DNA of 64,000 bases, taken from the sequence record NC_047838.1; one strand, written 5' to 3'. A model generated the notes under the pieces. It did not search any database. It saw only the letters and a program-made list of their open reading frames with translations, and was not told the origin of the DNA. Of the stretch, positions 33,061 to 54,547 are shown piece after piece. How positions within the stretch are numbered: position 1 is the stretch's first letter; every line of letters starts with the position of its first letter. The position numbers and the translations under genes were made by a program.

Positions 33061-33082
33061 ACTAAGGTCAACAAGCAAGAAA

Positions 33083-33835: not shown

Positions 33836-33930
33836 TGGTTTCTTGCTTTACCTAAGAGCAAGTGGTGCGGATGGAGGTAACACTCCCGCCCTGTTTCTTG
33901 CTTCAGGTTAAAGAGCAAGTGGCGTGCATG
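33836..33930 (+). ncRNA. Probable wcaG RNA motif (tandem hairpin-pseudoknot units with two UGGYG)
   Basis: Two units X-TTTCTTGCTT-X'-TAA(A)GAGCAAG-TGGYG, upstream of a WcaG-type SDR gene; family assignment from memory of the Rfam description. Confidence 0.6.
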
Positions 33931-33942
33931 AAAGACCTTACG

Positions 33943-33972
33943 AGGGGTGGTTGTGTAAACCGCCCCTTTTTG
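33943..33972 (+). terminator. Intrinsic terminator with overlapping extended -10 promoter (TGcTATGAT 33972-33980)
   Basis: AGGGGTGGTT-gtgta-AACCGCCCCT-TTTTT. Confidence 0.7.
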
Positions 33973-34005
33973 CTATGATATATAAGGAGGAAAATTACTA
34001 TTATT

Positions 34006-38491: not shown

Positions 38492-39645
38492 AACCAAATA
38501 TCCTTGTCCCTATGGCAGGACTTGGGAGCCGCTTCATCAAAGAAGGGTTCAAGGTTCCCAAGCAGTTAATTAATATCAAAGATAAACATCTGATTGACAT
38601 CTCTCTTGATTGTTTGGATTATGAGGGATGCAATCTTATTTTTGTGGTTCGTGATGAGACAGTCTATAATCACCACATGGACGAACTTCTGCGTAAGAAG
38701 TTTGGTGACGACATCAAAGTAGTTATTCTCGATAAACTAACAGATGGATCGGTTTCTAGTTGTCTTTACGCCGAAGAATATATTGACAACGATGCTCCTC
38801 TTATTATTCATACTCTGGATATTGAGTTTAGACCCGTTTTTAATCCTCATGTTATGACAGAGATGGATGCTGATGGACTGATCCTCACATTCAAATCAAA
38901 CTCTGCAAACTACAGTTATGCTAAGGTCGGTGACGATGGATTTGTCACGGAGACTGCAGAGAAGAAAGCAATTAGCAATAATGCCTGTGTAGGAATCTAT
39001 GGATTCAAGAAAGGATCTGACTTCTGCAAGTATGCACGAGACATGATCAACCGTGACCTACGCACTAAGAATGAGTTTTATATCTCTCCACTTTACAATC
39101 TTTTGATTGAAGACAACAAACAGATCAAGACACGATCTGTAGATAAAATGCATGTCTTTGGAACTCCTGATGAATATCACTTCTACAAAGATAATGTCAC
39201 TCGTCGTATTGGTGATAAACCTATTGCCATTTGTTCTGATCATTCTGGCTTTGAGGCAAAAGAAATCTTCAAAGAAGTTCTAGACAAGCATGGTCTGGAG
39301 TATATTGACTTTGGAACTGTGTTGAATCGTGATTGTGACTACCGTGATTACATCGCATCAGCAGTCAAATCTATCGGTGAGCGTGATTGTGACTATGGAT
39401 TTGGGTTTTGTCGCACAGGTCAAGGTGTGAATATCTGTGCAAACAAGTACAAAGGTATTAGATCTGCTCTGATTTATGATAATTTTGCTATGGAAATGTC
39501 AATCCGACACAACTGTGCAAACTTTTTTGCTATCCCAGCAAAGGATGCAGACTATGATGTATTAGATAAGTATCTTGAGATCTGTTCCTCCAATACCTTT
39601 GATGGTGGTCGTCATCAGATTCGTATTCAGGAGTTGGAGAAGTGA
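38488..39645 (+). CDS. Fusion: sugar-phosphate nucleotidyltransferase plus RpiB/LacAB isomerase
   Basis: N-term VPMAGLGSRF...PK; C-term SDHSG, CRTGQG, HNCAN, FDGGRH. Confidence 0.88.
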   Translation: MKPNILVPMAGLGSRFIKEGFKVPKQLINIKDKHLIDISLDCLDYEGCNLIFVVRDETVYNHHMDELLRKKFGDDIKVVILDKLTDGSVSSCLYAEEYIDNDAPLIIHTLDIEFRPVFNPHVMTEMDADGLILTFKSNSANYSYAKVGDDGFVTETAEKKAISNNACVGIYGFKKGSDFCKYARDMINRDLRTKNEFYISPLYNLLIEDNKQIKTRSVDKMHVFGTPDEYHFYKDNVTRRIGDKPIAICSDHSGFEAKEIFKEVLDKHGLEYIDFGTVLNRDCDYRDYIASAVKSIGERDCDYGFGFCRTGQGVNICANKYKGIRSALIYDNFAMEMSIRHNCANFFAIPAKDADYDVLDKYLEICSSNTFDGGRHQIRIQELEK

Positions 39646-39962
39646 TTGAAGCAAATATTCAAGACTTTCATGGGGGATGGTTCGTAGGAGACTTCGATCC
39701 ATCCCTTTTCAAGAACCCATTTTTTGAGGTTGCACACCATAAACATGAGAAAGGATGTGAAACATTCCCTCATTTTCACAAAGTCACTAATGAGTTGAAC
39801 TATATTGTGAGTGGTGAACTCATGGTTTCTGGTAAACATTTGAAAGCAGGAGACATGTGGATCTATGAACCGAATGAAGTCTCTGATGTTGAGTTCCTTG
39901 AGGACTCTGAATTGATTATTGTAAGGTGGCCATCTATTCCCTCTGATAAGTATCCAGCATGA
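39642..39962 (+). CDS. Small cupin
   Basis: GWFVGDF, PHFH...ELNY, PNE. Confidence 0.75.
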   Translation: MIEANIQDFHGGWFVGDFDPSLFKNPFFEVAHHKHEKGCETFPHFHKVTNELNYIVSGELMVSGKHLKAGDMWIYEPNEVSDVEFLEDSELIIVRWPSIPSDKYPA

Positions 39963-40711
39963 AACTAGCACTTTGTTTTTCGGGGCAACCCAGGTTCACA
40001 GAGGAGTGTTCTGGTAGCATTCTTGCTAATGTTATCCAAAATCATGACGTTGATGTCTTCGCACACCTGTGGTTTGACGAAGATTTGCAGACAAAACCCT
40101 ATAAATTTGGTGGAACTGGTGCATGGGAGGCACAGAGAATCCAAGAGAATGCTATTGAGACCTTCCAAAAGATCTACCAACCTGTCAGTCTGGCAGTAGA
40201 AAAGAGCAAATTCTTTGGTGATCCTGACCTTGATGCTGACTTTGAGGCATCAGAAGCAAAGTATTGGCCAGGTGGTATTGAAGAGCAACCAGACTTTCAG
40301 AAGAGACAAATCAACAACAGTCTCTCATATTTCTACAGTCTCTGTGAGGCAAATAGATTAAGAAAACTGTATGAATATGATAATAAGATAAAATATGATT
40401 ATGTAATTAGATGTAGAACCGATAGCGTGGTGCAAGTTCCCATCCCATATGAGAAATTTGACCCTAATGCAATCCATTTTACGTCACTTCAAGCACCTCC
40501 ACCGTTCCTGAATGACTGGTTTAACTTCGGTGGACCCGAAGCGATGGAGTCATTTATGGGTGTATTCCCTCTCCTTCGCAGTTTGATCCGCTCAACTAAG
40601 GAGAGACGTGAGGGAACATGGTGCATCGAACTAATTCATGTGGAGTTGCTAGATAGAATGGGCATCCCCATGCAGAGGCATCCAATCCCCGTCACACTTC
40701 CAAGATTCTGA
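39959..40711 (+). CDS. Putative glycosyltransferase-like protein (paralog of 44799)
   Basis: LALCFSGQPR...YDYVIRCRTD...NDWF. Confidence 0.55.
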   Translation: MKLALCFSGQPRFTEECSGSILANVIQNHDVDVFAHLWFDEDLQTKPYKFGGTGAWEAQRIQENAIETFQKIYQPVSLAVEKSKFFGDPDLDADFEASEAKYWPGGIEEQPDFQKRQINNSLSYFYSLCEANRLRKLYEYDNKIKYDYVIRCRTDSVVQVPIPYEKFDPNAIHFTSLQAPPPFLNDWFNFGGPEAMESFMGVFPLLRSLIRSTKERREGTWCIELIHVELLDRMGIPMQRHPIPVTLPRF

Positions 40712-40712
40712 T

Positions 40713-42287
40713 ATGAAAGTTGTAATTCCCATGTCTGGGATGAGTCGTAGATTCTCAGTAGCAGGTTATAAAGATCCAAAATACCTTTTAGAGATTGATG
40801 GCATGACTGTCATCGAACATATTGTCAATCTGTATCCAAAAGACTCAGAGTTTGTATTCATTATTAATGACAAACATGAGAAAGAGACTGAAGTAGTTGA
40901 AGTTTTGAACCGTATTACAGATGATCCGACCATCATTACCATCAATCAACATAAGAAAGGACCAGTTCATACGGTATTAGAGGCAGAGAGATTTATCGAT
41001 GATGATGAACCTGTCATCGTTAATTACTGTGACTTCTCTATGAAGTGGGACTACGATGACTTTGTTTCTCACGTCGAAGACACCGAGTGTGATGGGTCTG
41101 TGATCTCATATACTGGATTCCACCCTCACATGCTGGGTAGTGATAACTATGCTTTCTGTAGATTAAGAGAAGGATCATATCAGATCGAAGAGATTAGAGA
41201 GAAGCAACCATTTACTGACAACAAGATGTCAGAGTATGCCTCTACTGGCACTTACTATTTCAAGAAAGGTAAGTATATCAAGCATTATTTTCAGCAATTG
41301 ATTGATGAAGAAATCAGTTGTAAGGATGAATATTATGTCAGTCTTGTTTACAACTTGATGATTAAGGATGGACTTTATAACACCGTATATGAGGTCCCAA
41401 ACATGCTTCAGTGGGGAACACCACTAGATGTGAAGATGTATCAGCAGTGGTCAAATTACTATGCTGACAATATGAATGGCATCAAACTTCTTAAAATTAA
41501 GGGATGCACCACCGTCATTCCCATGGCAGGTGCAGGTAGTAGATTCTCAAAAGAAGGATACGGAGTTCCCAAACCATTTCTTGAAGTGAATGGTGGATAT
41601 ATGATCAATCAGGCACTCCGATGCCTTCCTGAAACTGATAATAAGATCTTTGCATGTCTCAGATCTCATATGAGTATGCTGCCCCTAGAGGACTTTGAAA
41701 ACGTTGTTTGGATTGATGAGGTCACAGAGGGACAAGCTTGCACCACAGAATTATTGGTTGACAAAGTGAACGAGGGTGATTCAATTCTACTCTCTGCATG
41801 TGATAATGGTGCTCTCTATGACTCAGATAAGTTTGCAGACCTTATTGAGAATGTTGAGAATGATATTGTAGTCTGGAGTTATAGAAATAATTACACAGCA
41901 CACCACAATCCCAACATGTATTCGTGGTTAGATGTGGATGATGATGGAAATGTTAACAAGGTAAATGTCAAGAAATTCCCATATGGATCAAACCCTGTAG
42001 ATGAATATGCTATAGTAGGGACTATGTTCTTTAGAAATAAAGAAGTTTATAAAAAATCTCTTGAACGACTGTATGAAATCGATGAGAGAGTTAACGGTGA
42101 GTTCTATGTAGATACACTATTGAACACCGCAATAGAACTTGGATACAAGGTCAAGAATTTTGAGATTGATCACTATATTTGTTGGGGAACACCTAACGAT
42201 TTAAAGACTTATAGATACTGGCAAAGATTTTTTACATCTGTAGATTGGCACCCTTATGACTACTATAAAGATTTCTTCACAGATTAG
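40713..42287 (+). CDS. Tandem double sugar-nucleotidyltransferase-domain protein
   Basis: Two N-terminal signatures VIPMSGMSRRF and VIPMAGAGSRF, each ending WGTP. Confidence 0.85.
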   Translation: MKVVIPMSGMSRRFSVAGYKDPKYLLEIDGMTVIEHIVNLYPKDSEFVFIINDKHEKETEVVEVLNRITDDPTIITINQHKKGPVHTVLEAERFIDDDEPVIVNYCDFSMKWDYDDFVSHVEDTECDGSVISYTGFHPHMLGSDNYAFCRLREGSYQIEEIREKQPFTDNKMSEYASTGTYYFKKGKYIKHYFQQLIDEEISCKDEYYVSLVYNLMIKDGLYNTVYEVPNMLQWGTPLDVKMYQQWSNYYADNMNGIKLLKIKGCTTVIPMAGAGSRFSKEGYGVPKPFLEVNGGYMINQALRCLPETDNKIFACLRSHMSMLPLEDFENVVWIDEVTEGQACTTELLVDKVNEGDSILLSACDNGALYDSDKFADLIENVENDIVVWSYRNNYTAHHNPNMYSWLDVDDDGNVNKVNVKKFPYGSNPVDEYAIVGTMFFRNKEVYKKSLERLYEIDERVNGEFYVDTLLNTAIELGYKVKNFEIDHYICWGTPNDLKTYRYWQRFFTSVDWHPYDYYKDFFTD

Positions 42288-43368
42288 ATACTGGGACCAA
42301 AGTCCAACTAGAAGAATCACACCTACGGACAGGAATGGTAGGACAATTGAGGTAGCATATTTTCATCTCGCTCAATTCACAGGATATTCTAAACATTATC
42401 CTCTTCCACTTCTTTACTCTTATAAGAATAAAAAACTCTCTCTACCTTTGAGAGAAAAGTTCATGTCTTTGGACAGAGGAACAGTCTATGAAGCAAGTGA
42501 TATGTTTTTTGAGGATGAACTTCCTGAGGTGCAAAAGACAGTAGACATTCCCGTGTTTTACTTCGTGTATAACATGGCAAACTATTACCATTTTATCTAC
42601 GATACACTGCCATATCTGTACTCTTACTTTAATGAGAAGAAGATTCACCCTGACATGAAACTCCTTGTCAGTCCGCCTGAGGGTCAGGATGATCTGTATC
42701 CTTTCGTATGGGACTCTTTGAACATGCTGGGGATTACGAAAGATGATGTGGTGTTTCTTGACCCAGAAGTGATGTATAACCGTGTATGTGTGTCATCTTC
42801 TCTGACACATAATGGTCTCTCTAACTGTCCACCCCATGACGGTGTGTTTGAGATTTTGAATAGTTTGAAGAGTGACTATATTGGTCCAGAAAAGATTTAT
42901 ATCTCACGTCGCACCTGGGTTCACAATAAAAAAGACAACATCGGAACGGACTATACAGAACGTCGTCGCTGTGTAAATGAAGATCAGATGGCACAGATCT
43001 TTAAACTGTATGGATTTAAAGAAATTTTCTGTGAGAACTTGACAATGGAGGAGAAGATTGGTATGTTTAGGACTGCAAAATATGTCGCAGGTCCTATAGG
43101 TGGTGGGATGTGCAATCTTATTTTCTCTCCTTCAGAGACCAAAGTTATGTCAATCAATAGTCCTACATTCATGGATGTGAACTTGAGATTCGCATACTCT
43201 ATGGTTCATACCGATCTCTTTAACTTTGAACATACAGAGTTTGTGGATAGGCAGGAGGAGAGTGTTGAGAGTGAGGGATCTCTATCTATTACTGGGGGTC
43301 TTAATTCACCTTGGCAAGTTGATCTAAATAAACTATCCAAAATTCTTGATAAATGGATTCAATCATAG
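42256..43368 (+). CDS. GT61/DUF563 glycosyltransferase-like
   Basis: NYYHFIYD, KIYISRR, ENLTMEEKI, GPIGGGMCNLIF. Confidence 0.8.
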   Translation: MTTIKISSQIRYWDQSPTRRITPTDRNGRTIEVAYFHLAQFTGYSKHYPLPLLYSYKNKKLSLPLREKFMSLDRGTVYEASDMFFEDELPEVQKTVDIPVFYFVYNMANYYHFIYDTLPYLYSYFNEKKIHPDMKLLVSPPEGQDDLYPFVWDSLNMLGITKDDVVFLDPEVMYNRVCVSSSLTHNGLSNCPPHDGVFEILNSLKSDYIGPEKIYISRRTWVHNKKDNIGTDYTERRRCVNEDQMAQIFKLYGFKEIFCENLTMEEKIGMFRTAKYVAGPIGGGMCNLIFSPSETKVMSINSPTFMDVNLRFAYSMVHTDLFNFEHTEFVDRQEESVESEGSLSITGGLNSPWQVDLNKLSKILDKWIQS

Positions 43369-44015
43369 AGTTAGCAAGGACGTTAGGTCCATATGCTATA
43401 TGCGGGGAGGGTAACGTCTCCGTGAAGGATGATGACTGTTTCTGGGTGAAAGCAAGTGGTACATCACTTGACACTCTTGAGAAGAAAGATCTTGTCGCGT
43501 GCAAGATGAGTGGTGTGCCTTTTGATTCTCTGGGCATCAAACCAAGTATTGAAACTTCTTTTCATGCATGGTTGCAGCGTGAGTTTGATGCTATCAAGTA
43601 TGTGGCACACACTCATCCTCCCAAGACGATGCAGGTTGTGTGTTCAGAGCAGATTTACTCGTTTGCTGAGCATAGATTGTTTCCTGATCAGGTGGTGAGG
43701 AACGGTGCAAAGTCTTGCGTCGTGCCATATGCCATGCCAGGTAAACCACTTTTAGAAGAAATTAAGAAGAGTGTTCTTGCATTTATAGAGGTTGAGGAAT
43801 ATTTTCCTAAATTGATCTTACTGCAGAATCATGGTATAATTGTAGCGTCTACCTCACACAAAGAGTGTATTGCATCTACTCTGATGTGTGAAAAATCTGC
43901 AGAGATCTTTATTGGTGCAAAGGTTCTGGGTCAAACTAGATTCCTTTCTGCTGAAGAGGTTGAAGAAATTGACAAGTGTCCAAGCGAAGAAAGAAGGAGA
44001 ATGATGTATCGATGA
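43353..44015 (+). CDS. Class II aldolase/adducin family protein
   Basis: GNVS, KPSIETSFH, AHTHP, LLQNHG. Confidence 0.88.
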   Translation: MDSIIELARTLGPYAICGEGNVSVKDDDCFWVKASGTSLDTLEKKDLVACKMSGVPFDSLGIKPSIETSFHAWLQREFDAIKYVAHTHPPKTMQVVCSEQIYSFAEHRLFPDQVVRNGAKSCVVPYAMPGKPLLEEIKKSVLAFIEVEEYFPKLILLQNHGIIVASTSHKECIASTLMCEKSAEIFIGAKVLGQTRFLSAEEVEEIDKCPSEERRRMMYR

Positions 44016-44320
44016 TAATCTACGTTGATATTGACGAGACCATTTGTCATAGAGAAACTTCTACTGACTTTGGAGTGACGCATGACTATACGAAAGCAAA
44101 ACCCATTCAAGAAAACATAGATAAGATTAATAAGTTGTATGATGATGGTCATACAATTGTCTATTGGACTGCACGAGGCAGTAGAAAACAGATTGACTGG
44201 ACTGAACTTACTAAGAATCAATTGGAAGAGTGGGGTGCCAAGTATAATGAACTGAGAACTGACAAACCTTTCTATGATCTTTTTGTTGAAGATAAATCAT
44301 GTGTGATCGAACAACTTTAA
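44012..44320 (+). CDS. Minimal HAD-superfamily phosphatase
   Basis: YVDIDETIC, WTARG, KP, DK. Confidence 0.8.
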   Translation: MIIYVDIDETICHRETSTDFGVTHDYTKAKPIQENIDKINKLYDDGHTIVYWTARGSRKQIDWTELTKNQLEEWGAKYNELRTDKPFYDLFVEDKSCVIEQL

Positions 44321-44802
44321 AAATTATTTCTCACCGAGGTAATATTAAAGGACCTCAACCAGACAAAGAAAATAGACCTAGTTACATCGATTGTGCTATT
44401 GGTAATGGATATCAGGTAGAGATTGATGTCAATCTACGTGATGGTGAACTGTGGTTAGGTCATGATGAACCTCAGTATAAGATCAATCATAAGTGGATTG
44501 ATGAGAGAGCAGATTATCTGTGGTTGCACTGCAAGGACTTTGATGCGGCTAGAGAGTGCTGGCAATATCAAGCATTCTGTCACTCTGGTGATCCATTCGT
44601 TTACACCTCTAACGGTAAGATCTGGTTGCATGGTGAGAATGACAACCTATATACCCTTGACGACATGACTATTATTCCAGTCATTAACGAAGAGGATTCA
44701 AAGTCCTTTGGCACTATGTTGCTGAGAGGGTCTACACAATTTTTTGGAATGCCTTTTGGTGTTTGTACTGACTACCCTGCCATTATTGGAGAATATGTAT
44801 GA
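44299..44802 (+). CDS. Glycerophosphodiester-phosphodiesterase-like (short TIM barrel)
   Basis: ISHRG...EN...VEIDV...LGHD...VCTDY. Confidence 0.7.
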   Translation: MCDRTTLKIISHRGNIKGPQPDKENRPSYIDCAIGNGYQVEIDVNLRDGELWLGHDEPQYKINHKWIDERADYLWLHCKDFDAARECWQYQAFCHSGDPFVYTSNGKIWLHGENDNLYTLDDMTIIPVINEEDSKSFGTMLLRGSTQFFGMPFGVCTDYPAIIGEYV

Positions 44803-45554
44803 GTAAGAAATTTGCGGTTTGTTTTTCTGGGTATCCTAGATTCGTTAGACAACAATTTAAGAGCATCAAAGAGAACTTCTTAGATGGTCTGGGTGACTAT
44901 GATGTCTACGCTAAGTTCCAATGGAAAGACGATTACGAAAATATTCAGATTCATCATGAGTATGATGATAAGTTTGAGGTCAACGAACTTGAGGACTTCA
45001 AAGAACTGTATGCAGACAAACTGAAGAAGATTGAGGTTATTGAACCATACAAGTTTGACTTAGAGTTTAGTGACCAGAGTGCTGAAGGAGATATGTTCCT
45101 GTCCAAAGAGCAGGCAAAGGATGTTGGATATCGAATGAAGTGCCAGTTCCAAGGTATTGCTGACTGTATTGACATCATCGACAATATCGAGGACTATGAT
45201 TATGTTGTCCGCATGAGGACTGATGTGACCTTCATGTCTGAGATTGAGATGAAGGACCTTGAGACTGATGTCATCATGAATCAGGATGGTTTTGTTGCTG
45301 GTCGTGATCGTCCCTGGTCTGATTGGTTCTTCATCTCTCCGGTCAAGGATGTTCAGTTCTTTCATGATATGGCAAAGATTGAGGAGCACTTTAGTGGGGG
45401 TGTCAGACACACCCATAACGTCCTTGCAGAGGTCGGACGTAAGTATGGCATGGAATACTTTGAGTTCTATGTTAGAACTCCCACAGCAACTGGTGGTGAT
45501 ATTGGCACACCGTTTAAGAAACAAACTAACAAGTATACTGTTATTGCACGATGA
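44799..45554 (+). CDS. Putative glycosyltransferase-like protein (paralog of 39959)
   Basis: FAVCFSGYPR...YDYVVRMRTD...SDWF. Confidence 0.55.
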   Translation: MSKKFAVCFSGYPRFVRQQFKSIKENFLDGLGDYDVYAKFQWKDDYENIQIHHEYDDKFEVNELEDFKELYADKLKKIEVIEPYKFDLEFSDQSAEGDMFLSKEQAKDVGYRMKCQFQGIADCIDIIDNIEDYDYVVRMRTDVTFMSEIEMKDLETDVIMNQDGFVAGRDRPWSDWFFISPVKDVQFFHDMAKIEEHFSGGVRHTHNVLAEVGRKYGMEYFEFYVRTPTATGGDIGTPFKKQTNKYTVIAR

Positions 45555-46567
45555 CTACAGTTTTTGCCAAGGCACCGTTGCGTTTAGCGATGGCAGGTGG
45601 CGGAACTGATCTTCTGCCATACTGGAGACATTATGGTGGTGTGGTATTGAATGGGACGATTGACCAGTATGCTTACTGTAAGATTGAACCATACCATGAG
45701 TGGTTGTTTAAGAGTGTTGATCTTGAAGAGGAGGAGGGGTATTTTCCTCTAGGTGATCAGTATGTTGACACAAAATTAAAACTGCTGATCAATACATATC
45801 AATACCTTACAAAGGGTATTGATAGGCATCCTGTTAAGATCACAACATTTGTTGAGGCACCTCCTGGTAGTGGTCTTGGTAGTTCTAGTGCTCTTGTAGT
45901 AGCACTTATCTCTGCTATTGCTGAGTATTACAGCATCCCTCTAGGCGAATATGATGTTGCAGAGTATGCTGTAGAGATTGAAAGAAATATTTGTAACCTT
46001 CCAGGTGGTAAGCAGGATCAATTTGCTGCTGCATTTGGTGGGTTTAACTTTATTGAGTTCTTGCCTGACGGTAGGACAATTGTGAATCCTTTGAGACTTA
46101 ATCCAAAGACTCAGAACATGCTTGAGTTGAGCACGGTCTTGTATTACGTCGGCAAACCAAGGATGGACGAGAGAGTTATTGAGAATACTTCACTTAATCT
46201 CCTCAATAACGATGAAGCAACTCTACAAGCAACACATAGAATCAAATCTGCTGCCATAGAATACAAGAGAAGTCTTCTTCTAGGTGATGTTGATAAGATC
46301 TGTGAGACCATGAACACCTATTGGAAGAACAAAATTCAGACTAATGAGAAGGTTGTCTCTCCTGAGTTGCTAGATAGTTATGAGTTTGCTCTTAAGAACG
46401 GAGCGAAAGCTGCTAAGATATCTGGTGCTGGTGGCGGTGGTCACATGATTCTCTTCACAGATTTTGAGAGGAGACATCAACTTATTTCTGCTCTGAAAAA
46501 GAGAAAGAAGGGAAGAGTGGTGCCATTTAAGTTCGTCAAACATGGGGTTGATGTATGGAGACCGTAG
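45551..46567 (+). CDS. hddA: D-glycero-D-manno-heptose 7-phosphate kinase (GHMP)
   Basis: KAPLRLAMAGGGTD, PPGSGLGSSSA, GGKQDQFAAAFGG, KISGAGGGG. Confidence 0.9.
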   Translation: MTTVFAKAPLRLAMAGGGTDLLPYWRHYGGVVLNGTIDQYAYCKIEPYHEWLFKSVDLEEEEGYFPLGDQYVDTKLKLLINTYQYLTKGIDRHPVKITTFVEAPPGSGLGSSSALVVALISAIAEYYSIPLGEYDVAEYAVEIERNICNLPGGKQDQFAAAFGGFNFIEFLPDGRTIVNPLRLNPKTQNMLELSTVLYYVGKPRMDERVIENTSLNLLNNDEATLQATHRIKSAAIEYKRSLLLGDVDKICETMNTYWKNKIQTNEKVVSPELLDSYEFALKNGAKAAKISGAGGGGHMILFTDFERRHQLISALKKRKKGRVVPFKFVKHGVDVWRP

Positions 46568-46905
46568 AACTTCATCCAAAAGGATGGGGATACGAAAAAT
46601 GGATTGTCAATACTGATGAGTATTGTGGCAAACTTCTCTTCTTTGAAGAAGGAAAGAGGTGTTCGTGGCACTATCATAAACTGAAAGATGAAACTTTCTA
46701 TCTTCAGTCTGGTAAGATGTTGCTTTATTATGGAGACTCTGACGATCTGAACTTAGCAAAGGACCGTATCTTAGAACCAGGAGACAAGTTTCATATCTAC
46801 CGTGGATTGAGACATCAGATGGTTGCAGTTGAACCGTCTGAACTTTTTGAATTTTCAACACAACATTTTGAAGATGATAGTTACAGAGTTATCAAAGGGG
46901 ACTAA
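46555..46905 (+). CDS. Cupin, mannose-6-phosphate-isomerase type II-like
   Basis: KGWGYE, CSWHYHKLKDETF, HQM. Confidence 0.75.
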   Translation: METVELHPKGWGYEKWIVNTDEYCGKLLFFEEGKRCSWHYHKLKDETFYLQSGKMLLYYGDSDDLNLAKDRILEPGDKFHIYRGLRHQMVAVEPSELFEFSTQHFEDDSYRVIKGD

Positions 46906-47524
46906 GTTATATCTGCTGGTAGGTGGTCGTGGAACTAGATTAGCGTCTGTAACTAACGGTAAACCTAAACCTCTTGTAGATATTCAAGAGCAATCATTCC
47001 TTGATATTGTTTTAGACAACTTATCTGGGTTTGATGTCACCTTGATATGCTCTGATTTAAACTACGAATACTTTAAAACTTACCGTAGGTCTGGTTATGA
47101 AGTATTCAACGAAGGCATTCCCTCAGGAACTGGTGGATTTTTACGGAAAGTAAATCTACCAGATTCTTTTTATGTGATGAATGGTGACACCTTTTTCTCT
47201 GGTGATTTGAACCTGGATTGTGATGAGTCAACTATCTTTGTTGCTGAAGAAGATGTGACTCATGACGTTGGATACATCCAAGGAGAGGATGGAAAGGTGA
47301 AATGTTTTGTAGAAAAGAATCCTGATGCATCTGGTAAGGAACTTGTGAGTCTTGGTATCTACAAATTGTTTAAGAAAGATATAGATATTCCGAATAAGTT
47401 GCCCGTCAGTATGGAATATGATATACTACCAAAGATGGAACTATGTTACAAAATTCTAAAGACTAGAAGGTTCGACATCGGAACTCCTGAAAGATTACAA
47501 ACATTCAAAGACTGGGTATGTTAA
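46874..47524 (+). CDS. hddC: Heptose-1-phosphate guanylyltransferase-like
   Basis: LLVGGRGTRL...KPL, GTGG, MNGDTF, FDIGTPE; next to hddA; start uncertain. Confidence 0.8.
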   Translation: MIVTELSKGTKLYLLVGGRGTRLASVTNGKPKPLVDIQEQSFLDIVLDNLSGFDVTLICSDLNYEYFKTYRRSGYEVFNEGIPSGTGGFLRKVNLPDSFYVMNGDTFFSGDLNLDCDESTIFVAEEDVTHDVGYIQGEDGKVKCFVEKNPDASGKELVSLGIYKLFKKDIDIPNKLPVSMEYDILPKMELCYKILKTRRFDIGTPERLQTFKDWVC

Positions 47525-48336
47525 AGATTATTGGTGCCACCGGTAATGTTGGCAAAAGACTTTTAGAAAAATCTCTTGATGTTTGGCATGATGATGTAGA
47601 AGCGATTGCTACACGTCTTGATAAAGATGAATTGGAATATGATTTTGACTCTCTTAATCATGAAGATGTGATTGCTTTTTGTGCAGCAATCTCTGAACCG
47701 ACTGTTTGTGCTAATAATCCTGAACTGGCTAGGAAAGTCAACGTAACTAAAACGATTGAGTTTATTGAAAAGTCAACTCAGAGGGGAGCAAGAGTTGTGT
47801 TTCTCTCAAGTGATGCGGTGTATGGTAATATTGATAATCAATTTGATGAGCAGTGGCATAAAGATCCGATTGGTGTCTATGGTGAGATGAAGTCTGAAGT
47901 TGAGGAATATTTCAGAGGAAGTCCTGATGTCAAAGTGCTTAGGTCATCGTTCAACTTCTTCAAAGAGGATAGATTTACATCGTATCTGCAGAAGTGTGCA
48001 TTAAATCATGAGGTTGCGGAGGTATTCTCTCCTTTTGAAAGATCTATTATTCATCGTGATGATACAGTTGATGCTATACTAAGTCTTTCTAGAAACTGGG
48101 AGGGTCCTCAGTTCATCAATTGTGGTGGTCCTCATACTATTTGTAGGTCTGAGTTTGCTCAAATTTTGAAGGAAGAGGTGTTCCCTTCTCTTCAAATTGA
48201 GATTGTCAGACCACCTGAAAAATTCTATCAAGACAGACCTGGCACGGTATCGATGATCTCAAATCCTCTTGTTAATGTGCTTGGCAGACCACAAAGAACG
48301 TTGAGAGAGGCAATTCGCATGGAGTTTGACGTATGA
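47518..48336 (+). CDS. dmhB: GDP-4-keto-6-deoxy-heptose reductase-like SDR
   Basis: GATGNVG, AAISEP, SSDAVYG, YGEMKSEVE; resembles Yersinia DmhB as recalled. Confidence 0.7.
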   Translation: MLKIIGATGNVGKRLLEKSLDVWHDDVEAIATRLDKDELEYDFDSLNHEDVIAFCAAISEPTVCANNPELARKVNVTKTIEFIEKSTQRGARVVFLSSDAVYGNIDNQFDEQWHKDPIGVYGEMKSEVEEYFRGSPDVKVLRSSFNFFKEDRFTSYLQKCALNHEVAEVFSPFERSIIHRDDTVDAILSLSRNWEGPQFINCGGPHTICRSEFAQILKEEVFPSLQIEIVRPPEKFYQDRPGTVSMISNPLVNVLGRPQRTLREAIRMEFDV

Positions 48337-49352
48337 AAAGAGTATTGATCACCGGAATCACAGGTCAAGTTGGTTCTCAATTAGCAGATTATATTCTCAA
48401 TAACACCGATTACGAAGTAGTTGGTATGATGCGGTGGCAAGAACCACTTGATAACATCTATCACCTGACTGATCGTATCAATAAGAAAGACAGAATCAGC
48501 ATTTACTATGCTGATTTGAATGATGGCATGTCCATCAGGAGAATGATTGAGGAGATTAGACCCGACTATATCTCTCATCTTGCTGCACAGTCATATCCAA
48601 AGACATCGTTTGATATTCCTATCGAAACTCTGCAAACAAACATCATCGGCACCGCTAATTTGCTTGAGGCAATCCGTCAGACACCAAAGTATGACCCTGT
48701 GGTGCATGTTTGCTCGTCATCTGAGGTCTATGGTAAGACACCGACAGGAGTTGTGCTTAATGAAGACACTCAAATGCATGGAGCAAGTCCATATAGTATC
48801 AGCAAAATTGGAACAGATCACCTAGGAAAATTCTATGGTGAGGCATATGGTCTGAAAACATTTATGACTCGTATGGGAACTCATACTGGACCTAGAAGGA
48901 GTGATGTTTTCTTTGAGAGCACGGTAGCAAAACAGATTGCTTTGATTGAAGCAGGTTATCAAGAACCTTATGTGTACGTTGGCAACTTGTCCAGCACTAG
49001 AACATTTCAAGATGCACGAGATGCGGTAAGAGCTTACTACCTGTTGCTTGAAGCAAGTGCTGAGGGTAGGATTGCACCAGGAGAACACTTTAATATCGCT
49101 GGTGACGAGGCATATAACCTGGAGGATGTTGTTAACCTGTTGCTGAGTTTTAGCACAAAGAGAGGTATTACAGTCAAAACTGATGTAAATCGTCTGAGAC
49201 CTATCGATGCAGACTATCAGATGTTTGACAACGCTAAAATTAAAAGTGTGATTGATTGGAAACCTGAGATTCCTACCAGACAAATGTTTCTTGATCTTTT
49301 AGTCCACTGGAGAGAGCAGATTAAGGGTGGTCGTGTGCCCCTGAATCGTTGA
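48333..49352 (+). CDS. dmhA: GDP-manno-heptose 4,6-dehydratase
   Basis: TGQVGSQLADY, MMRWQE, TSFDIPIETLQTN, RMGTHTGPRRSDVF, RPIDADYQ; resembles Yersinia DmhA as recalled. Confidence 0.85.
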   Translation: MKRVLITGITGQVGSQLADYILNNTDYEVVGMMRWQEPLDNIYHLTDRINKKDRISIYYADLNDGMSIRRMIEEIRPDYISHLAAQSYPKTSFDIPIETLQTNIIGTANLLEAIRQTPKYDPVVHVCSSSEVYGKTPTGVVLNEDTQMHGASPYSISKIGTDHLGKFYGEAYGLKTFMTRMGTHTGPRRSDVFFESTVAKQIALIEAGYQEPYVYVGNLSSTRTFQDARDAVRAYYLLLEASAEGRIAPGEHFNIAGDEAYNLEDVVNLLLSFSTKRGITVKTDVNRLRPIDADYQMFDNAKIKSVIDWKPEIPTRQMFLDLLVHWREQIKGGRVPLNR

Positions 49353-49377
49353 CTTGAGAGACAATATATACTATGAT
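49349..49377 (+). promoter_or_regulatory. Internal sigma70-like promoter in the glycan island
   Basis: TTGACT-17 nt-TATGAT in the only sizeable gap of the island. Confidence 0.65.
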
Positions 49378-49397
49378 TGAAGAAACATATTGTCTGT

Positions 49398-50369
49398 ATG
49401 AAAATTGTTATCTGGGGTCATCCCCTTGGGACGCATACTCATTCATATTCTAATCACGGATATTACCGAGCATTTAAACAACTAGGACATGATGTCCACT
49501 GGTTCCCTGATGAAGAACCACCAGAGGACTTTGACTTCTCCAACACCATCTTTATTGGTGAGGGAGATAGTGGTGCAAAACATATTCCCATCAACGACAC
49601 TAGCACATACTTCATGATGTACCTTCCTGATCCCAGGAGGTTTGATGGTGTCAAGAATCTAATCGATGTTCGTCTGACTGCAAAGAACTGTAAGGATCAC
49701 ATCTACGACTTCTCATTTGACGCGAGCAAGTGTAAGTCCATGGGTCCTAGCGTGTGGTTTGAACCTAAGAAAGAAGGTCTCATTCACTTCAAGAACGACT
49801 ATGTAGACGCAGAGATTCCTGATACAAACAAGATGTATATCAGTTGGGCAACGGATCTGCTGCCTGATGAGATTGACTTTGATGAGATGTATCGTGAGCG
49901 TGAGAAAGCTATCTGGTTCTGTGGAACAATCTCACCTCATGGTCAAGCAGAGAACTGGTCTAACTGGGAACCATTTATTGAGCAGTGTTCTAGTCATGGC
50001 TTAGATTTTCATTATAACGATGTGTGGCAGAATCCTTTGTCATTTGCTGATGTAATGGATCTGACCCGTCGATCTATGCTTGGTATCGATATTCGTGGTA
50101 AGTGGCACGTAGAGACCCGTGTGGTGACCTGTCGTGTGTTTAAGAACATCAGTTATGGTCATCTCGGCATGACTAACTCAGAGCAGATCTATCAAGAGAT
50201 GGATGGCAATATGATTTACAATCCTGATCCTGCTCAACTATTCCATGATGGAATGAAGAATCGAACCAACTTTGATTTGATTCGTAAAGGTATGCAGTAT
50301 GTCAAAGAGAATCACACATACATCAATCGTGCTACCTCCCTGTTGAAAGTATTTGAAGAAGTATCATGA
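49398..50369 (+). CDS. Putative GT-B glycosyltransferase (CgeB/DUF3880-like C-terminus)
   Basis: RAFKQLGHDVHW; RVFKNISYG; KENHTYINR. Confidence 0.6.
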   Translation: MKIVIWGHPLGTHTHSYSNHGYYRAFKQLGHDVHWFPDEEPPEDFDFSNTIFIGEGDSGAKHIPINDTSTYFMMYLPDPRRFDGVKNLIDVRLTAKNCKDHIYDFSFDASKCKSMGPSVWFEPKKEGLIHFKNDYVDAEIPDTNKMYISWATDLLPDEIDFDEMYREREKAIWFCGTISPHGQAENWSNWEPFIEQCSSHGLDFHYNDVWQNPLSFADVMDLTRRSMLGIDIRGKWHVETRVVTCRVFKNISYGHLGMTNSEQIYQEMDGNMIYNPDPAQLFHDGMKNRTNFDLIRKGMQYVKENHTYINRATSLLKVFEEVS

Positions 50370-51172
50370 ATAAAGCAACTATTGTCTCTGCTCTCTTTAA
50401 TATTGAGAGAGAGGTTATGGATGGTAGACCTTGGGAGGAGTATCTTAAATGGTTTGACATCTTTCTGAAACTTAAGACACCGATGGTTCTCTTTGTCACA
50501 GAGGACCTTGTGGAGTTTATTGACGAAAGACGTAAGGATATTCCAACTAAAGTCATCGTTCAGAAGACAGAAGACATCCCATACTTCTATCTTCATGACC
50601 AGATTCAAGAGATTCTTGACTCTGAAGAATACAAAGAGAAGATCTCTGATCCTGATAGGATTGAGTGTAATCATGCTATGTATTCTGTTATTCAGTATTC
50701 CAAATTCCCTTGGATGAAGAAAGCAGCAGAACTGAATCCACATGACTCTGATGTATTCTTCTGGTTGGATGCTGGTGGATCTAGATTCTTCGGTGACTTT
50801 GACCTGAACAAAGAGTTCCCAGGTAAACCCGCATATGAATCCCTGGAGGAGATGGGTGAAAGTTTCTTGATTCAGATGAATTGTGATTACTACCCTGATC
50901 TATTTCAGAAGAAAGAACTCACCCTGTCATACCTCTTTGACAATAGATCATATGTTCTGGGTTCTCTGTTTGGTGGACATAAGAACTCTGTTGCAAAGGT
51001 GTGTGATATGGTAGAGGACATTCTGTTGAACAGAATGATCAAGAAAGGTAATGTAAATAACGAACAGATTGCTCTAGGATACTTGGTTAAGAAGCATCCT
51101 GATGAGTTTTCTGTGTACTCCAGGACGAATGGAGAGCACATGGACATCTTTAACGTATTAGCAAGCGAATGA
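50366..51172 (+). CDS. HtrL/YibB (WlaTC)-family glycosyltransferase-like
   Basis: TIVSALF, YSVIQYSKF, FWLDAG, NEQ. Confidence 0.75.
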   Translation: MNKATIVSALFNIEREVMDGRPWEEYLKWFDIFLKLKTPMVLFVTEDLVEFIDERRKDIPTKVIVQKTEDIPYFYLHDQIQEILDSEEYKEKISDPDRIECNHAMYSVIQYSKFPWMKKAAELNPHDSDVFFWLDAGGSRFFGDFDLNKEFPGKPAYESLEEMGESFLIQMNCDYYPDLFQKKELTLSYLFDNRSYVLGSLFGGHKNSVAKVCDMVEDILLNRMIKKGNVNNEQIALGYLVKKHPDEFSVYSRTNGEHMDIFNVLASE

Positions 51173-52122
51173 AAGTAGCAATTGTTGGACCTGGCATCAT
51201 GCCTATCCCACCTACAGGATGGGGTGCAGTTGAGATTCTGATCTGGGATCAGAAACTTGCTCTTGAGAAACTGGGTCATGAAGTTCAGATTGTAAATACA
51301 CCTAACCCTGTTGAAATTATTCAACAGATCAACGCATATCGACCCGACTTTGTTCATGTTCAGTATGATGACTTTGTTGAGGTTGTTCCCTACATTCAGT
51401 ATCCTTGTGCGATTACCAGTCACTTTGGATATCTAGAGCAACCAAGTAGGTGGGATTACTATGGTCCTAGGGTAGCAAAGAAATTTGTAGAACTTAAACC
51501 AAATGTATTCTGTTTGTCTCAGGGCATTAAGGATACTTACAATAGTATGATGGGATTTAAAGATGAGAATCTTTTTGTCACACCTAACGGAGTCAACCTC
51601 ACTAACTTCAAAGTTTCTGACAATCCTGAGTGTCCTGACAAGTCTATCTACCTTGCTAAGATTGACTATCGTAAGCGTCAGCACATGTTCCAGAGTATTG
51701 AGAGTCTGTATTTTGCTGGCAATAATGCAGACCCCCGCTTTGATGTAAACACCAGATACCTGGGTGAGTGGTCCAAGGATCACCTCTATAACAACCTGAC
51801 AGAGTTTGGCAACCTAATCCTACTGAGTGATGGTGAAGCACATCCTCTGGTCTGTCTTGAGGCATTTGCTGCAGGTCTTGGTGTGGTTGTAAGTGAGTGG
51901 GCTGCTGCCAACCTAGATACTAGTAAGGGATTTATCACAGTCATACCCGAATCGAAGATTAGCGATATCGAGTTTGTAGAATCGGAGATTATTAAGAACA
52001 GAGAATACTCTGCAGCAAATCGGGAAGAGATTCTTGACTATGCAAAAGAGTTTGAATGGTCTAGAATAGTTGATGAATACTATGTGCCCGCGATGAACAA
52101 GATTATTGAGAGATATCAATGA
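51169..52122 (+). CDS. GT4-like glycosyltransferase
   Basis: IPPTGWGAVE, PNGV, RKRQH, EAHPLVCLEAFAAGL. Confidence 0.82.
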   Translation: MKVAIVGPGIMPIPPTGWGAVEILIWDQKLALEKLGHEVQIVNTPNPVEIIQQINAYRPDFVHVQYDDFVEVVPYIQYPCAITSHFGYLEQPSRWDYYGPRVAKKFVELKPNVFCLSQGIKDTYNSMMGFKDENLFVTPNGVNLTNFKVSDNPECPDKSIYLAKIDYRKRQHMFQSIESLYFAGNNADPRFDVNTRYLGEWSKDHLYNNLTEFGNLILLSDGEAHPLVCLEAFAAGLGVVVSEWAAANLDTSKGFITVIPESKISDIEFVESEIIKNREYSAANREEILDYAKEFEWSRIVDEYYVPAMNKIIERYQ

Positions 52123-53693
52123 AGAATCTGGTTAGTATTTTTGCAGGTCATGATGCAAACATTTCTTTCTATAGTGCAAAGGAAGATAAGTATTACACAA
52201 TTGAGATTGAGAGACTTGTAAAGAAGAGATATTTTCGTCTGCATGTAGATAATGACGAGCAGACTGTTCGTGATATTCTTTTCGAGTGTAGAAATATTGC
52301 TGCCACAGAGTGGGGTATCACTAACGACTATGAGACAGTTCTCGTCTCATCTGATGGTTGGATTAGTCCACCATCCATCATCAAAGAGGTGTTCAACACA
52401 GAGTCTGTGAAGACTGTTGCCCGACACCATGAGACCCATGCTGCTGCAGCATTCTACAAGTCCCCATTTGATGAGGCACTTATCATCTCCTACGATGGTG
52501 GTGGCGATGATGGATTCTTTAACGTCTATCGTGGAGGACCTGATGGTATTGAAAGTTTTGAAAGCATTCAGGCAGACTTTGGTGGTGCCTATCTTTTGTG
52601 TGGATCTCTAATTCGTGAGGTAGCAGAGAAGAGTAGACATCAACTTGCTCTGTCTGGAAAGTTGATGGGTCTCTGTGCATATGGAAACGTCGTAGAGGAA
52701 TACATTCCTGCATTTGAGAAGTTCTTCTTTGACAAGGACTACAAGAGACTTGCAGAGGAAACTGGTCTGCCTCTAAAGAATGTTGATGATCCATGGGCAA
52801 ATCCTCTGGAGAACTGGGTCTTTGAGGGTCAGCAAGGATACGATATTGCTGCTACGGCACAGCAGGCATTTGAGAATGCATTCTTTACTGTCTTGCAGAG
52901 ATACGAACCCGATCTTCCCCTGGTCCTTACAGGTGGATGTGCCCTTAATGTGCTGGTAAATGAGAAGATCAAACAGGTAAGCACGCGACCTTTGTATGTC
53001 CCACCTGATCCCCATGATGGTAGTCTTTCTTTAGGACACCTGTTCTTGTATAAGAAACCAACCAAGAAAGTAGACATTACATATGCTGGTCTGCCTCTGG
53101 TTGACCGACATAGACTGAAGCGTGAGATCAAAAACTATAATGCCAAGAAGATTACCAAGGCAGATGCTGCTGAACTTCTGAAGCAAGGCAACATTATTGG
53201 ATTTGTGTATGGAGATTCTGAGGTAGGACCACGCGCACTAGGTAATCGTTCTATTGTATGTGACCCTAACATCAAGGAGATGAAGGACATCTTGAATGCT
53301 AAGGTCAAGTTCCGTGAATGGTATCGTCCCTTTGCTCCTTTCTGTAAGAAGGAAGAAGCACACAGATACTTTGACTCACCTAACTTTGAGAACCTTGAGT
53401 ACATGAGCTATGCTCCTAAGGTTCGTGAAGAATATATTGAGAAACTGCCATCCATCACTCATGCTGACAATACTGCTAGACTGCAGACTGTCACAGAAGA
53501 GTCACACGCACACTTCTATGAGTTGCTTACAGAGTTTGGTAAGATCTCAGAGACTAACGTGCTGCTGAATACTTCATTCAACATCAGAGGATTCCCTGTT
53601 CTCTCTTCAATTGAGGATGCTTTGTATGCTCTAAATAACACGCAAATGGATTATGTGGTGATTGAAGATTATCTTTTTGGTAAAGCAGAATGA
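52119..53693 (+). CDS. Carbamoyltransferase (NodU/CmcH family)
   Basis: HHETHA, DGGGD, GKLMGL, GGCALN, GPRALGNRS, REWYRPFAP, LNTSFN. Confidence 0.93.
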   Translation: MKNLVSIFAGHDANISFYSAKEDKYYTIEIERLVKKRYFRLHVDNDEQTVRDILFECRNIAATEWGITNDYETVLVSSDGWISPPSIIKEVFNTESVKTVARHHETHAAAAFYKSPFDEALIISYDGGGDDGFFNVYRGGPDGIESFESIQADFGGAYLLCGSLIREVAEKSRHQLALSGKLMGLCAYGNVVEEYIPAFEKFFFDKDYKRLAEETGLPLKNVDDPWANPLENWVFEGQQGYDIAATAQQAFENAFFTVLQRYEPDLPLVLTGGCALNVLVNEKIKQVSTRPLYVPPDPHDGSLSLGHLFLYKKPTKKVDITYAGLPLVDRHRLKREIKNYNAKKITKADAAELLKQGNIIGFVYGDSEVGPRALGNRSIVCDPNIKEMKDILNAKVKFREWYRPFAPFCKKEEAHRYFDSPNFENLEYMSYAPKVREEYIEKLPSITHADNTARLQTVTEESHAHFYELLTEFGKISETNVLLNTSFNIRGFPVLSSIEDALYALNNTQMDYVVIEDYLFGKAE

Positions 53694-54547
53694 AATTTGA
53701 ATTAGGAGATTATACGATTGAGTGTGACATAGATCCTACTCAAGAGAACAACGCTAGTGATGAGAGAGTTCCGATTGAGAGTATCGGATTCATCTATAAC
53801 TGTCTTTTCAAACAGAAGAGAGCATTTGAGCACTCTGTAGAAGCAATCAGGGAGGTTTATCCTGATGCAAAGATCTATGCTGTCTCTGATGGTGGTCTTG
53901 ACTACTCATACATGGAGGATGAGAACTTTAAGTTCTCCATGGAAGAAGATACCGTGTCTGATCTGAAGAAGGTTGGAGGTGAAAACTTCTTAAGTGAAGA
54001 GTGTCAGATGTATATTAAGAGAGGCATGGCAGCAACTCTTGATCGCCTGGAGCGTGGTATCGAATACTGTGGTAATCCAGAGTGGATCTGCATGACAGAA
54101 CCTGATGTATTGATCCGTGGTAAGTTGACTGCTCCCGTTAATGGAAAACTCCTTGGATCACGTATCAATTGTGGGTGGAGAACACCAAAAGCACTTGAGC
54201 AATTCATGGGTCTCAACGAAGTGATTGCTGAAGTCGAGGGATCTATTCCAGTTCTGAGATGGGGTGCTGTTCCTGTAGTATTTCATACAGAAACTTTTCT
54301 GAAAGCACTTAAAATATACAAAGAAAACTTTAATATTGTAGACAAGTTCTCTGAGAAACATTACTCACCAGGCACCTTTGACTTGTTTATTGGTCTGGTC
54401 TTTGCTTTAATTGGTGAACCAGAAGTCTTTAACTCTGAGGTAACTGAGTGTCTTAGAAACCCTGGATGGCAGACATCAGGTCATCCAATTGTCCATCAAT
54501 ACAGAGAATATTACGAACAAAGCGATTTTTACGGAGTACCAGCATGA
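53690..54547 (+). CDS. Putative GT-A glycosyltransferase-like hypothetical
   Basis: AVSDGG, MTEPD; island context. Confidence 0.45.
   Translation: MKFELGDYTIECDIDPTQENNASDERVPIESIGFIYNCLFKQKRAFEHSVEAIREVYPDAKIYAVSDGGLDYSYMEDENFKFSMEEDTVSDLKKVGGENFLSEECQMYIKRGMAATLDRLERGIEYCGNPEWICMTEPDVLIRGKLTAPVNGKLLGSRINCGWRTPKALEQFMGLNEVIAEVEGSIPVLRWGAVPVVFHTETFLKALKIYKENFNIVDKFSEKHYSPGTFDLFIGLVFALIGEPEVFNSEVTECLRNPGWQTSGHPIVHQYREYYEQSDFYGVPA

Follow-up and report, generated by a model that had tools for sequence, protein, structure and literature searches.

Large cyanomyoviruses with lipopolysaccharide ("LPS") gene clusters have been known since 2005. The GDP-6-deoxyheptose pathway, too, is already known. 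In E. coli O52, the O antigen of which contains 6-deoxy-D-manno-heptose (PMC7685785), the annotated gene order is short-chain dehydrogenase/reductase (SDR), dehydratase, GHMP kinase, GmhA, nucleotidyltransferase, and GmhB, and the same six-gene order was found in about 30 bacterial loci and on a contig of a Synechococcus single-cell genome. In Campylobacter jejuni, the precursor of the capsular heptoses is derived from sedoheptulose 7-phosphate via HddA and HddC (PMC10680097). Here, we describe a five-gene module at positions 45551 to 49352 of a 64,000-nucleotide stretch of sequence record NC_047838.1 (the window, to which coordinates refer unless stated otherwise). Together with a gene for a small HAD protein located upstream, the five genes may constitute a self-contained phage route from sedoheptulose 7-phosphate to GDP-6-deoxy-heptose, a reading to which we assign a probability of roughly 0.6.

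The module is 100% identical to positions 169551 to 173352 of Synechococcus phage Bellamy (NC_047838/MF351863), a T4-like phage of the Kyanoviridae with Synechococcus WH8109 as isolation host, and its DNA is 82% identical to that of phage SynMITS9220M01. A first-pass annotation of the window had described five overlapping plus-strand genes and named their families, and both the open reading frame (ORF) coordinates and the Pfam and NCBIfam assignments bear this out. The five ORFs fill the segment, with successive overlaps of 13, 32, 7, and 4 nt. They encode a GHMP kinase, proposed to be the heptose kinase HddA (45551 to 46567); a 116-residue cupin of the Cupin_2 family (46555 to 46905; T4-GC 307, phrog_7851), which bears the database name "cysteine dioxygenase"; an NTP_transferase family protein, hereafter HddC-like, as the proposed heptose-1-phosphate guanylyltransferase (46874 to 47524, counted from the RefSeq ATG at 46874, with the mechanically called ORF beginning at TTG 46823); a 272-residue SDR of the RmlD_sub_bind family, proposed to be a GDP-4-keto-6-deoxy-heptose C4 reductase of the DmhB/WcbJ positional type (47518 to 48336); and the putative dehydratase DmhA, an SDR that matches the Pfam family GDP_Man_Dehyd with 247 bits (48333 to 49352). 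The five genes are not decaying and are under purifying selection. Specifically, the dN/dS ratio between Bellamy and SynMITS9220M01 is 0.04 to 0.09 in each of them, values that are approximate given the partial saturation of dS (0.6 to 1.7); the genes are therefore maintained and are not chance ORFs. The G+C content of the module agrees with that of the remaining phage genome.

Judged by its sequence, the product of 48333 to 49352 is closer to characterized heptose 4,6-dehydratases than to GDP-mannose dehydratases. Its best PDB match is 7US5, the heptose dehydratase of C. jejuni, with an E value of 8e-168 and approximately 75% identity over the full length. The choice between a heptose dehydratase and an ordinary GMD, which the first-pass annotation had raised, falls on the heptose side, with 561 bits for 7US5 versus 115 to 158 bits for the next matches, which are RMD/GMD enzymes. 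DmhA also stays below the GMD equivalog cut-off of NCBIfam (168 versus 415 bits) and shares 74% identity with its E. coli O52 counterpart. Aligned to 7US5, it shows the NAD site (GITGQVGS for GxxGxxG) and the catalytic residues in SSSE and YSISK (YxxxK). If the module is read as proposed, DmhA is predicted to prefer GDP-heptose to GDP-mannose.

A scan of one genome per species yielded 69 loci with a dmhA-type gene, about 65 of them with full-length copies that are 68 to 77% identical to phage DmhA; a single full-length copy among these, at 86% identity, came from a mis-binned phage contig. Bacterial carriers include Campylobacter, Helicobacter, Nitrosomonas, Dechloromonas, Gallionella, Limnohabitans, marine gammaproteobacterial single-cell genomes, and one Synechococcus single-cell genome. 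The phage copies form a single clade (support 98/98), and the synteny of the module is kept in at least 14 IMG/VR contigs, in which DmhA identity ranges from 76 to 92%. Since dmhA occurs in only 2 of 50,697 deposited phage records (Bellamy and SynMITS9220M01), where it is annotated merely as epimerase/dehydratase, a 6-deoxyheptose branch carried by a phage seems to be so far undescribed. A 25-kb contig recorded as "MAG: Methanobacteriota archaeon NP128" (PCAW01000016.1; L017) shares synteny with the Bellamy cluster (protein identities of 73 to 96%), and the DmhA it encodes groups within the phage clade; this contig almost certainly derives from a phage and was placed in an archaeal metagenome-assembled genome (MAG) by mis-binning.

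The kinase is, from its sequence, a clear relative of HddA/WcbL. It contains both GHMP_kinases_N and GHMP_kinases_C, matches the NCBIfam HddA model over its full length with 279 bits (runner-up family, 86 bits), scores 234 to 258 bits against the PDB entries 3K85, 4USK/4USM (WcbL), and 4N3O, and is 42% identical to HddA of E. coli O52. The nucleotidyltransferase appears to be a distant HddC: it carries GGRGTRL, an instance of the nucleotidyltransferase motif GGxGTRL, its top NCBIfam model is HddC (62 bits), its best PDB match is Yersinia HddC (5XHW/6JQ8, 52 bits), and it shares 31% of its residues with HddC of E. coli O52. In the 272-residue SDR, the GxxGxxG, Ser, and YxxxK motifs are all present. 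Over its full length, this protein is 41, 34, and 32% identical to the product of the gene just upstream of dmhA in Nitrosomonas, the Synechococcus single-cell genome, and E. coli O52, respectively, and a homologue lies directly upstream of dmhA in about 30 bacterial loci. We therefore propose that 47518 to 48336 and DmhA form a pair, with a putative C4 reductase in the dmhB position next to the dehydratase. The Campylobacter C4 reductases are not among the PDB sequence matches of the phage protein, and homologues of it are missing from most Campylobacter loci. Equating the SDR with the cyanophage "epimerase" T4-GC 308 was ruled out, as the two share only 30% identity over 106 residues. Taken with the assignments of DmhA, HddA, and HddC, the homology of the reductase to the gene in the dmhB position supports the first-pass claim of a phage-borne module leading from GDP-heptose to GDP-6-deoxyheptose.

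The cupin lies between hddA and hddC, the slot that gmhA occupies in the bacterial dmhB-dmhA-hddA-gmhA-hddC-gmhB cassette, and its sequence and contexts suggest that it is probably a non-homologous stand-in for the SIS-fold GmhA, i.e., a sedoheptulose-7-phosphate isomerase. We propose that it is a distant relative of the D-lyxose/D-mannose isomerase cupins with a new substrate, and hence an analogue, not a member, of the GmhA family. Lyxose and mannose isomerases yield aldoses that share the C2/C3 configuration of D-glycero-D-manno-heptose. The invariant residues of the cupin are K26, H39, H41, K44, E46, H87, E96, E99, and D108. In the lyxose isomerase of Thermofilum, Mn and sugar are bound by K62, H75, H77, K86, E88, H143, E156, and D163 (PMC8378251), which correspond to K26, H39, H41, K44, E46, H87, E96 or E99, and D108 of the cupin, E156 and D163 being matched by spacing only. 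The three-His-one-Glu metal site and the catalytic Lys, Glu, and Asp of lyxose/mannose isomerases are thus present. Pfam family Lyx_isomer (PF07385) is matched by 30 of 30 cupin family members (best E value, 1.3e-5), and a consistent match to SIS families is missing, a stray SIS_2 hit occurring in one of the 30 (E = 0.021). A PDB profile search with the cupin led to D-lyxose and L-ribose isomerases, with the motifs YCxK, GxxCxxHxH, and KxETF in common, as aligned against 2Y0O. AlphaFold (AF2) modeled the cupin with a pLDDT of 94, and the top Foldseek match of this model in the PDB is a D-lyxose isomerase, closely followed by small archaeal cupin phosphomannose isomerases (7ZVY and 7ZVM, 22 to 23% identity). 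Among viral predicted structures, Foldseek returned generic cupins only.

The cupin family is far more widespread than the module. Among deposited cyanophage records, 35 contain it (P-SSM2, S-SM2, S-CAM1, S-CAM3, S-SSM7, P-TIM68, S-T4, and others), as do at least 569 IMG/VR contigs, and when 1.84 billion representative proteins were searched with a profile, relatives turned up in 4,832 representative clusters at E ≤ 1e-3. In 55 cupin loci from IMG/VR that had 14 kb of context or more, genes were assigned by the best query per region and identity thresholds. The commonest layout among these loci is adenylyltransferase, PfkB kinase, HAD, and cupin, and an SIS gene is present in 2 of the 55. In P-SSM2, the partner genes of the cupin match both halves of HldE. 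When tblastn was run with two SIS queries, no SIS-type GmhA was found in Bellamy, and SynMITS9220M01 was the only cultured cyanophage with a match. Natural fusions point in the same direction as these layouts: one protein joins a complete HldE to the cupin (P0251, 410 bits to the HldE model), and others combine the cupin with heptose-7-phosphate kinase in both orders, with heptose-1-phosphate adenylyltransferase, or with the small HAD. In different lineages, the cupin is thus joined to each of the three other enzymes of NDP-heptose synthesis, and the isomerase is the sole activity left over. The gene for the HldE-cupin fusion lies in a cellular genome assembly, where a canonical GmhB is encoded two genes away and the surrounding 7.6 kb contain no SIS gene. 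In the literature searched, no paper combines cupin, sedoheptulose, heptose, and isomerase.

Three loci deserve mention in their own right. On contig JBFOMY010016177.1 of assembly GCA_040961665.1 (positions 4144 to 7397), the HldE-cupin fusion of the cellular genome just mentioned, with three domains and 587 residues, is followed by a GSU2086-family protein and then by a GmhB-type phosphatase. SynMITS9220M01 carries, at positions 21373 to 24452 of its locus, an extra heptose-type module composed of a second GHMP kinase, a divergent SIS protein, a HAD-cytidylyltransferase-like fusion, and a 295-residue SDR. In P-TIM68, a gene annotated "transketolase central region" (2923 to 4068 of the locus) lies directly upstream of the heptose kinase/cupin cassette; the annotated transketolase might supply sedoheptulose 7-phosphate.

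That GmhB is needed by the route yet absent from the module had been recognized correctly at first pass, and a candidate for this step is encoded at 44012 to 44320 on the plus strand, 1.2 kb upstream of hddA. This capless 102-residue HAD protein (T4-GC 306, phrog_1238) is named "phosphoheptose isomerase" in RefSeq and PHROGs, and the same name is attached to T4-GC 306 in P-SSM2, S-SM2, S-CAM3, P-TIM68, and S-T4. By its motifs, the name is wrong: the protein, of about 105 residues in the family, is a HAD phosphatase, with catalytic motifs I to IV, seen as DxDxT (VDIDGT), T-A-R, and GKP...DDK, unchanged in all seven aligned cyanophage copies. For the same reason, the RefSeq entry was ruled out as a source of GmhA. 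The real isomerase is probably the "cysteine dioxygenase" (T4-GC 307) rather than the "phosphoheptose isomerase" (T4-GC 306). Family matches of the small HAD are weak (HAD_PNKP, capsule-phosphatase, and BT0820-type models), and GmhB family models gave no match. Its linkage to the cupin is tight, with a median gap of 14 nt across 61 phage loci and direct adjacency in most of them; in three related contigs (L006 to L008), a homologue lies between hddA and the cupin, whereas the Bellamy-like module of SynMITS9220M01 has no small HAD of its own. This context makes it the natural candidate for the heptose-1,7-bisphosphate 7-phosphatase step, and we propose that it is a functional analogue of GmhB and not an orthologue, belonging to a HAD subfamily other than HAD-IIIA.

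In the proposed route, the cupin would serve as a lyxose/mannose-type, metal-dependent aldose-ketose isomerase, converting sedoheptulose 7-phosphate to the 7-phosphate of D-glycero-D-manno-heptose in place of GmhA. HddA would then phosphorylate C1, the small HAD would remove the 7-phosphate in place of GmhB, and the HddC-like enzyme would form GDP-heptose, which DmhA would dehydrate at C4 and C6 before the 272-residue SDR reduces C4. Soluble glycosyltransferases of the surrounding 24-kb cluster would finally place the sugar on an acceptor at the cytoplasmic side, candidates being a host lipid-linked glycan exported by host transporters or virion proteins. The steps assigned to HddA, the HddC-like enzyme, and DmhA rest on sequence homology to characterized enzymes, which is strongest for DmhA, and the final reduction rests on homology and conserved position; the isomerase and phosphatase steps and the acceptor we infer. 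The origin from sedoheptulose 7-phosphate, also put forward at first pass, is supported. We lean slightly toward the wider view that the 116-residue cupin (T4-GC 307) founds a new non-homologous class of sedoheptulose-7-phosphate isomerases, which together with the mini-HAD would let marine phages and some cellular organisms make ADP- or GDP-heptoses without GmhA or GmhB, picocyanobacterial hosts whose LPS has no heptose included.

Several observations weigh against this proposal. The cupin of the window scores 15.0 bits against Lyx_isomer, below the gathering threshold of 20.8, it is much shorter with its 116 residues than lyxose isomerases, and Foldseek gives similar E values for the epimerase domain of CapF, KdgF, and dioxygenases, which marks the cupin fold as generic. 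Both HddA (279 versus 600 bits) and the HddC-like enzyme (62 versus 300 bits) fall below their NCBIfam equivalog cut-offs, so that their sugar and nucleotide specificities are not certain; use of GTP by the HddC-like enzyme would follow solely from its GDP-dependent partner DmhA. The manno configuration of the product is likewise presumed, as stereochemistry cannot be read from a reductase identity of 32 to 41%. The host might supply GmhA, and a second possible isomerase is encoded in the same cluster by an RpiB domain fused to a nucleotidyltransferase (38488 to 39645), an arrangement syntenic in relatives. Finally, in three IMG/VR contigs (L009, L010, and L015) the cupin is followed directly by the reductase, with neither an HddC homologue nor a small HAD within 8 kb. 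The parts list is therefore not fixed; another nucleotidyltransferase and another phosphatase of the cluster may substitute in these contigs.

A different role for the cupin would be that of a C3 or C3/C5 epimerase acting on GDP-4-keto-6-deoxy-heptose, comparable to the cupin-fold enzymes DdahB/MlghB of Campylobacter or to the cupin domain of CapF of S. aureus; the product would then be another stereoisomer (altro, ido, or gulo type), and isomerization of sedoheptulose 7-phosphate would fall to the host or a different phage gene. In Campylobacter heptose clusters, the dehydratase does occur together with C4 reductases and with epimerases of the cupin fold (PMC10680097), the Bellamy cupin shares one operon with a dehydratase and a reductase, and the CapF cupin domain is among its top Foldseek matches (ranks 3 to 10, 16% identity). 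However, none of the 30 cupin family members matches the RmlC-type epimerase family (dTDP_sugar_isom) and only one matches FdtA, whereas the Lys/Glu/Asp set of lyxose isomerases is retained. The fusion partners, HldE kinase/adenylyltransferase and HAD, are enzymes of the early pathway. Moreover, most cupin cassettes have no 4,6-dehydratase, and at least 9 of the 55 loci are without any SDR within 8 kb, so that an epimerase would find no keto-sugar substrate there. We consider an epimerase role unlikely and retain that of an isomerase.

The remaining alternatives concern the module as a whole. Published heptose dehydratases have some GDP-mannose activity, the dehydratase belongs to the GDP_Man_Dehyd family, and small cupin phosphomannose isomerases (7ZVY and 7ZVM) are among the Foldseek matches of the cupin; the genes might then act on hexoses, with the cupin as phosphomannose isomerase and the dehydratase and reductase producing a GDP-6-deoxyhexose, e.g., GDP-rhamnose or GDP-6-deoxytalose. 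This is hard to reconcile with the difference of the dehydratase scores between the heptose enzyme and GMD/RMD, with its failure at the GMD equivalog cut-off, and with a kinase that fits HddA/WcbL heptokinases far better than any hexose kinase. The combination of a kinase and a phosphatase also follows the logic of the heptose route and not that of the ManB mutase route, and the partners in sister cassettes are HldE-type heptose enzymes, which makes hexose substrates quite improbable. Sullivan et al. 2010 (PMC3037559) raised the possibility that cyanophage LPS clusters are stuffer DNA. Applied to Bellamy, the genes would be passive, horizontally acquired cargo of a large-genome phage with no role in infection, in line with the position of the cluster in a hypervariable region beside tRNA genes and with the scarcity of dmhA in deposited phage records. 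The low dN/dS ratios, the phage-like G+C content, and the tight gene overlaps argue against it, as do the synteny in at least 14 IMG/VR contigs and the single phage DmhA clade, and we give passive cargo very little credence.

The module is enclosed in a glycan-synthesis cluster of 24 kb (34006 to 58128) with 29 co-directional genes on the plus strand. The cluster encodes GT11, GT6, GT61, GT4, GT25, and HtrL/YibB-type transferases, a carbamoyltransferase, a UDP-sugar dehydrogenase, a NadE-like protein, methyltransferases, and further sugar-activation genes. It is preceded by seven tRNA genes and a terminator-like hairpin (33942 to 33968); a promoter and terminator scan of 33000 to 52000 found no excess of sites over shuffled sequence. 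None of the 29 products has a predicted membrane segment, and there is no flippase, polymerase, ligase, or polyprenyl-phosphate transferase among them; the glycan would therefore be built on a cytoplasmic acceptor. Addition to a host lipid-linked glycan, exported by the host, would match the idea of superinfection exclusion put forward by Sullivan et al. 2005 (PMC1079782). In P-SSM2 and S-CAM3, a sister cassette abuts tail-fiber and structural genes, which gives a hint, but only a hint, at a virion-protein acceptor. Directly after dmhA, a conserved 323-residue protein is encoded on the plus strand (49398 to 50369); it keeps this place in every phage locus with dmhA, being syntenic in L002 (SynMITS9220M01), L004 to L015, and L017, and L016 stops 35 bp past dmhA. 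The protein shows a weak match to Glyco_trans_1_2 (E = 0.011), its AF2 model is poor (pLDDT 51), and Foldseek matches to GT-B structures are not significant; it is possibly a glycosyltransferase that uses the product of the module.

A second, four-part sugar-activation module at 37284 to 39962 comprises a KdsC-like HAD, a protein resembling the C-terminal half of PfkB, a nucleotidyltransferase-RpiB/LacAB fusion, and a second small cupin, which has 21% identity to the first and is missing the His of the second motif; in related phage contigs, a module of this type lies directly upstream of the hddA module. The genes at 39959 to 40711 and 44799 to 45554, the latter immediately upstream of hddA, form a paralogous pair (both phrog_13607, with a weak DUF7796 match) that is named "capsular polysaccharide biosynthesis protein" in related phages. 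From 52119 to 57295, a NodU/CmcH-type carbamoyltransferase, a 285-residue protein, a NadE-like ATP-pyrophosphatase, a methyltransferase, and a UDP-sugar 6-dehydrogenase are encoded in a row, which points to a uronic acid with carbamoyl and/or amide groups as part of the same glycan. Just downstream of the cluster and before pstS, a gene at 58261 to 58626 encodes an outer-membrane-protein-like beta-barrel (Pfam Phage_OMP, 175 bits).

As to the host, the first-pass statement that marine Synechococcus LPS lacks heptose holds for the strains WH8102 and CC9311 (PMC4515613). Two further phrases need correction. To call the product a "pathogen-type" sugar is misleading because the same cassette is widespread in environmental bacteria, namely, Nitrosomonas, Gallionella, Limnohabitans, marine gammaproteobacterial single-cell genomes, and others. 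The suggestion that the host may never make it is too strong and is weakened by AG-679-D13, labeled in its record as a marine Synechococcus single-cell genome, which has the full canonical cassette. In this genome, the complete reductase-dmhA-hddA-gmhA-hddC-gmhB cassette (QCUM01000003.1, 7120 to 11875 of the extracted locus) is located on an 87-kb contig that also carries cellular genes; the genes on its flanks are for type I secretion and large glycosyltransferases, and the G+C content is 43% over 17 kb. The DmhA of this cassette is not the one nearest to the phage clade.

With this reading, one LPS cluster becomes legible as a near-complete route from an intermediate of the Calvin cycle and the pentose phosphate pathway to a defined nucleotide sugar, and GDP-6-deoxyheptose becomes a concrete molecule to seek in virions and infected Synechococcus cells. 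The names "phosphoheptose isomerase" and "cysteine dioxygenase," which databases now attach to proteins of dozens of phage genomes, would be corrected, and a likely new enzyme family would be added for the first committed step of heptose synthesis. If phages do remodel picocyanobacterial surfaces or glycosylate their virions with a sugar foreign to the host, this would matter for superinfection exclusion, for host range, and for the carbon flow of phototrophs abundant in the ocean.

Compared with the E. coli O52-type cassette, the Bellamy module shows the same predicted chemistry, tight linkage, and four homologues (DmhA 74%, HddA 42%, HddC 31%, reductase 32%), whereas its order is hddA-cupin-hddC-reductase-dmhA and the carrier is a lytic T4-like phage with no linked export genes. 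A cupin stands in place of the SIS-fold GmhA, and instead of a GmhB-type HAD-IIIA protein there is the 102-residue HAD 1.2 kb upstream. Substituting a cupin and a mini-HAD for GmhA and GmhB would amount to a new form of the pathway, with a probable new enzyme family. With the capsular heptose pathways of C. jejuni, Bellamy shares the dehydratase (approximately 75% identity to 7US5) and, as proposed, the precursor route; the epimerases of C. jejuni, in contrast, are cupins of the RmlC type, a family to which the phage cupin gave no match. The type II phosphomannose isomerases/GDP-mannose pyrophosphorylases of the ManC/AlgA type and the cupin sugar isomerases (D-lyxose, L-ribose, and archaeal phosphomannose isomerases) resemble the phage protein as metal cupins that convert ketoses to aldoses with a manno/lyxo product, in their coupling or fusion to a nucleotidyltransferase, and in the motifs YCxK, HxH, KxE, and H. 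They differ in that the substrate proposed for the phage cupin is a seven-carbon phosphosugar; lyxose isomerases, moreover, have 170 to 230 residues with extra helices, whereas the phage cupin, at 22 to 24% identity, lacks these helices in its approximately 116 residues. The cyanomyovirus LPS gene clusters (P-SSM2, S-SM2, and S-SSM7; T4-GC 304 to 308) have in common with Bellamy the site near tRNA and hli genes, the pair of HAD (306) and cupin (307), and the logic of kinase, phosphatase, nucleotidyltransferase, and cupin. Their kinase and nucleotidyltransferase are the PfkB and adenylyltransferase halves of the HldE type, in keeping with ADP-heptose logic, and are accompanied by a different 270-residue SDR, whereas Bellamy combines the GHMP kinase HddA and HddC, i.e., GDP-heptose logic, with a dehydratase/reductase pair for 6-deoxygenation.

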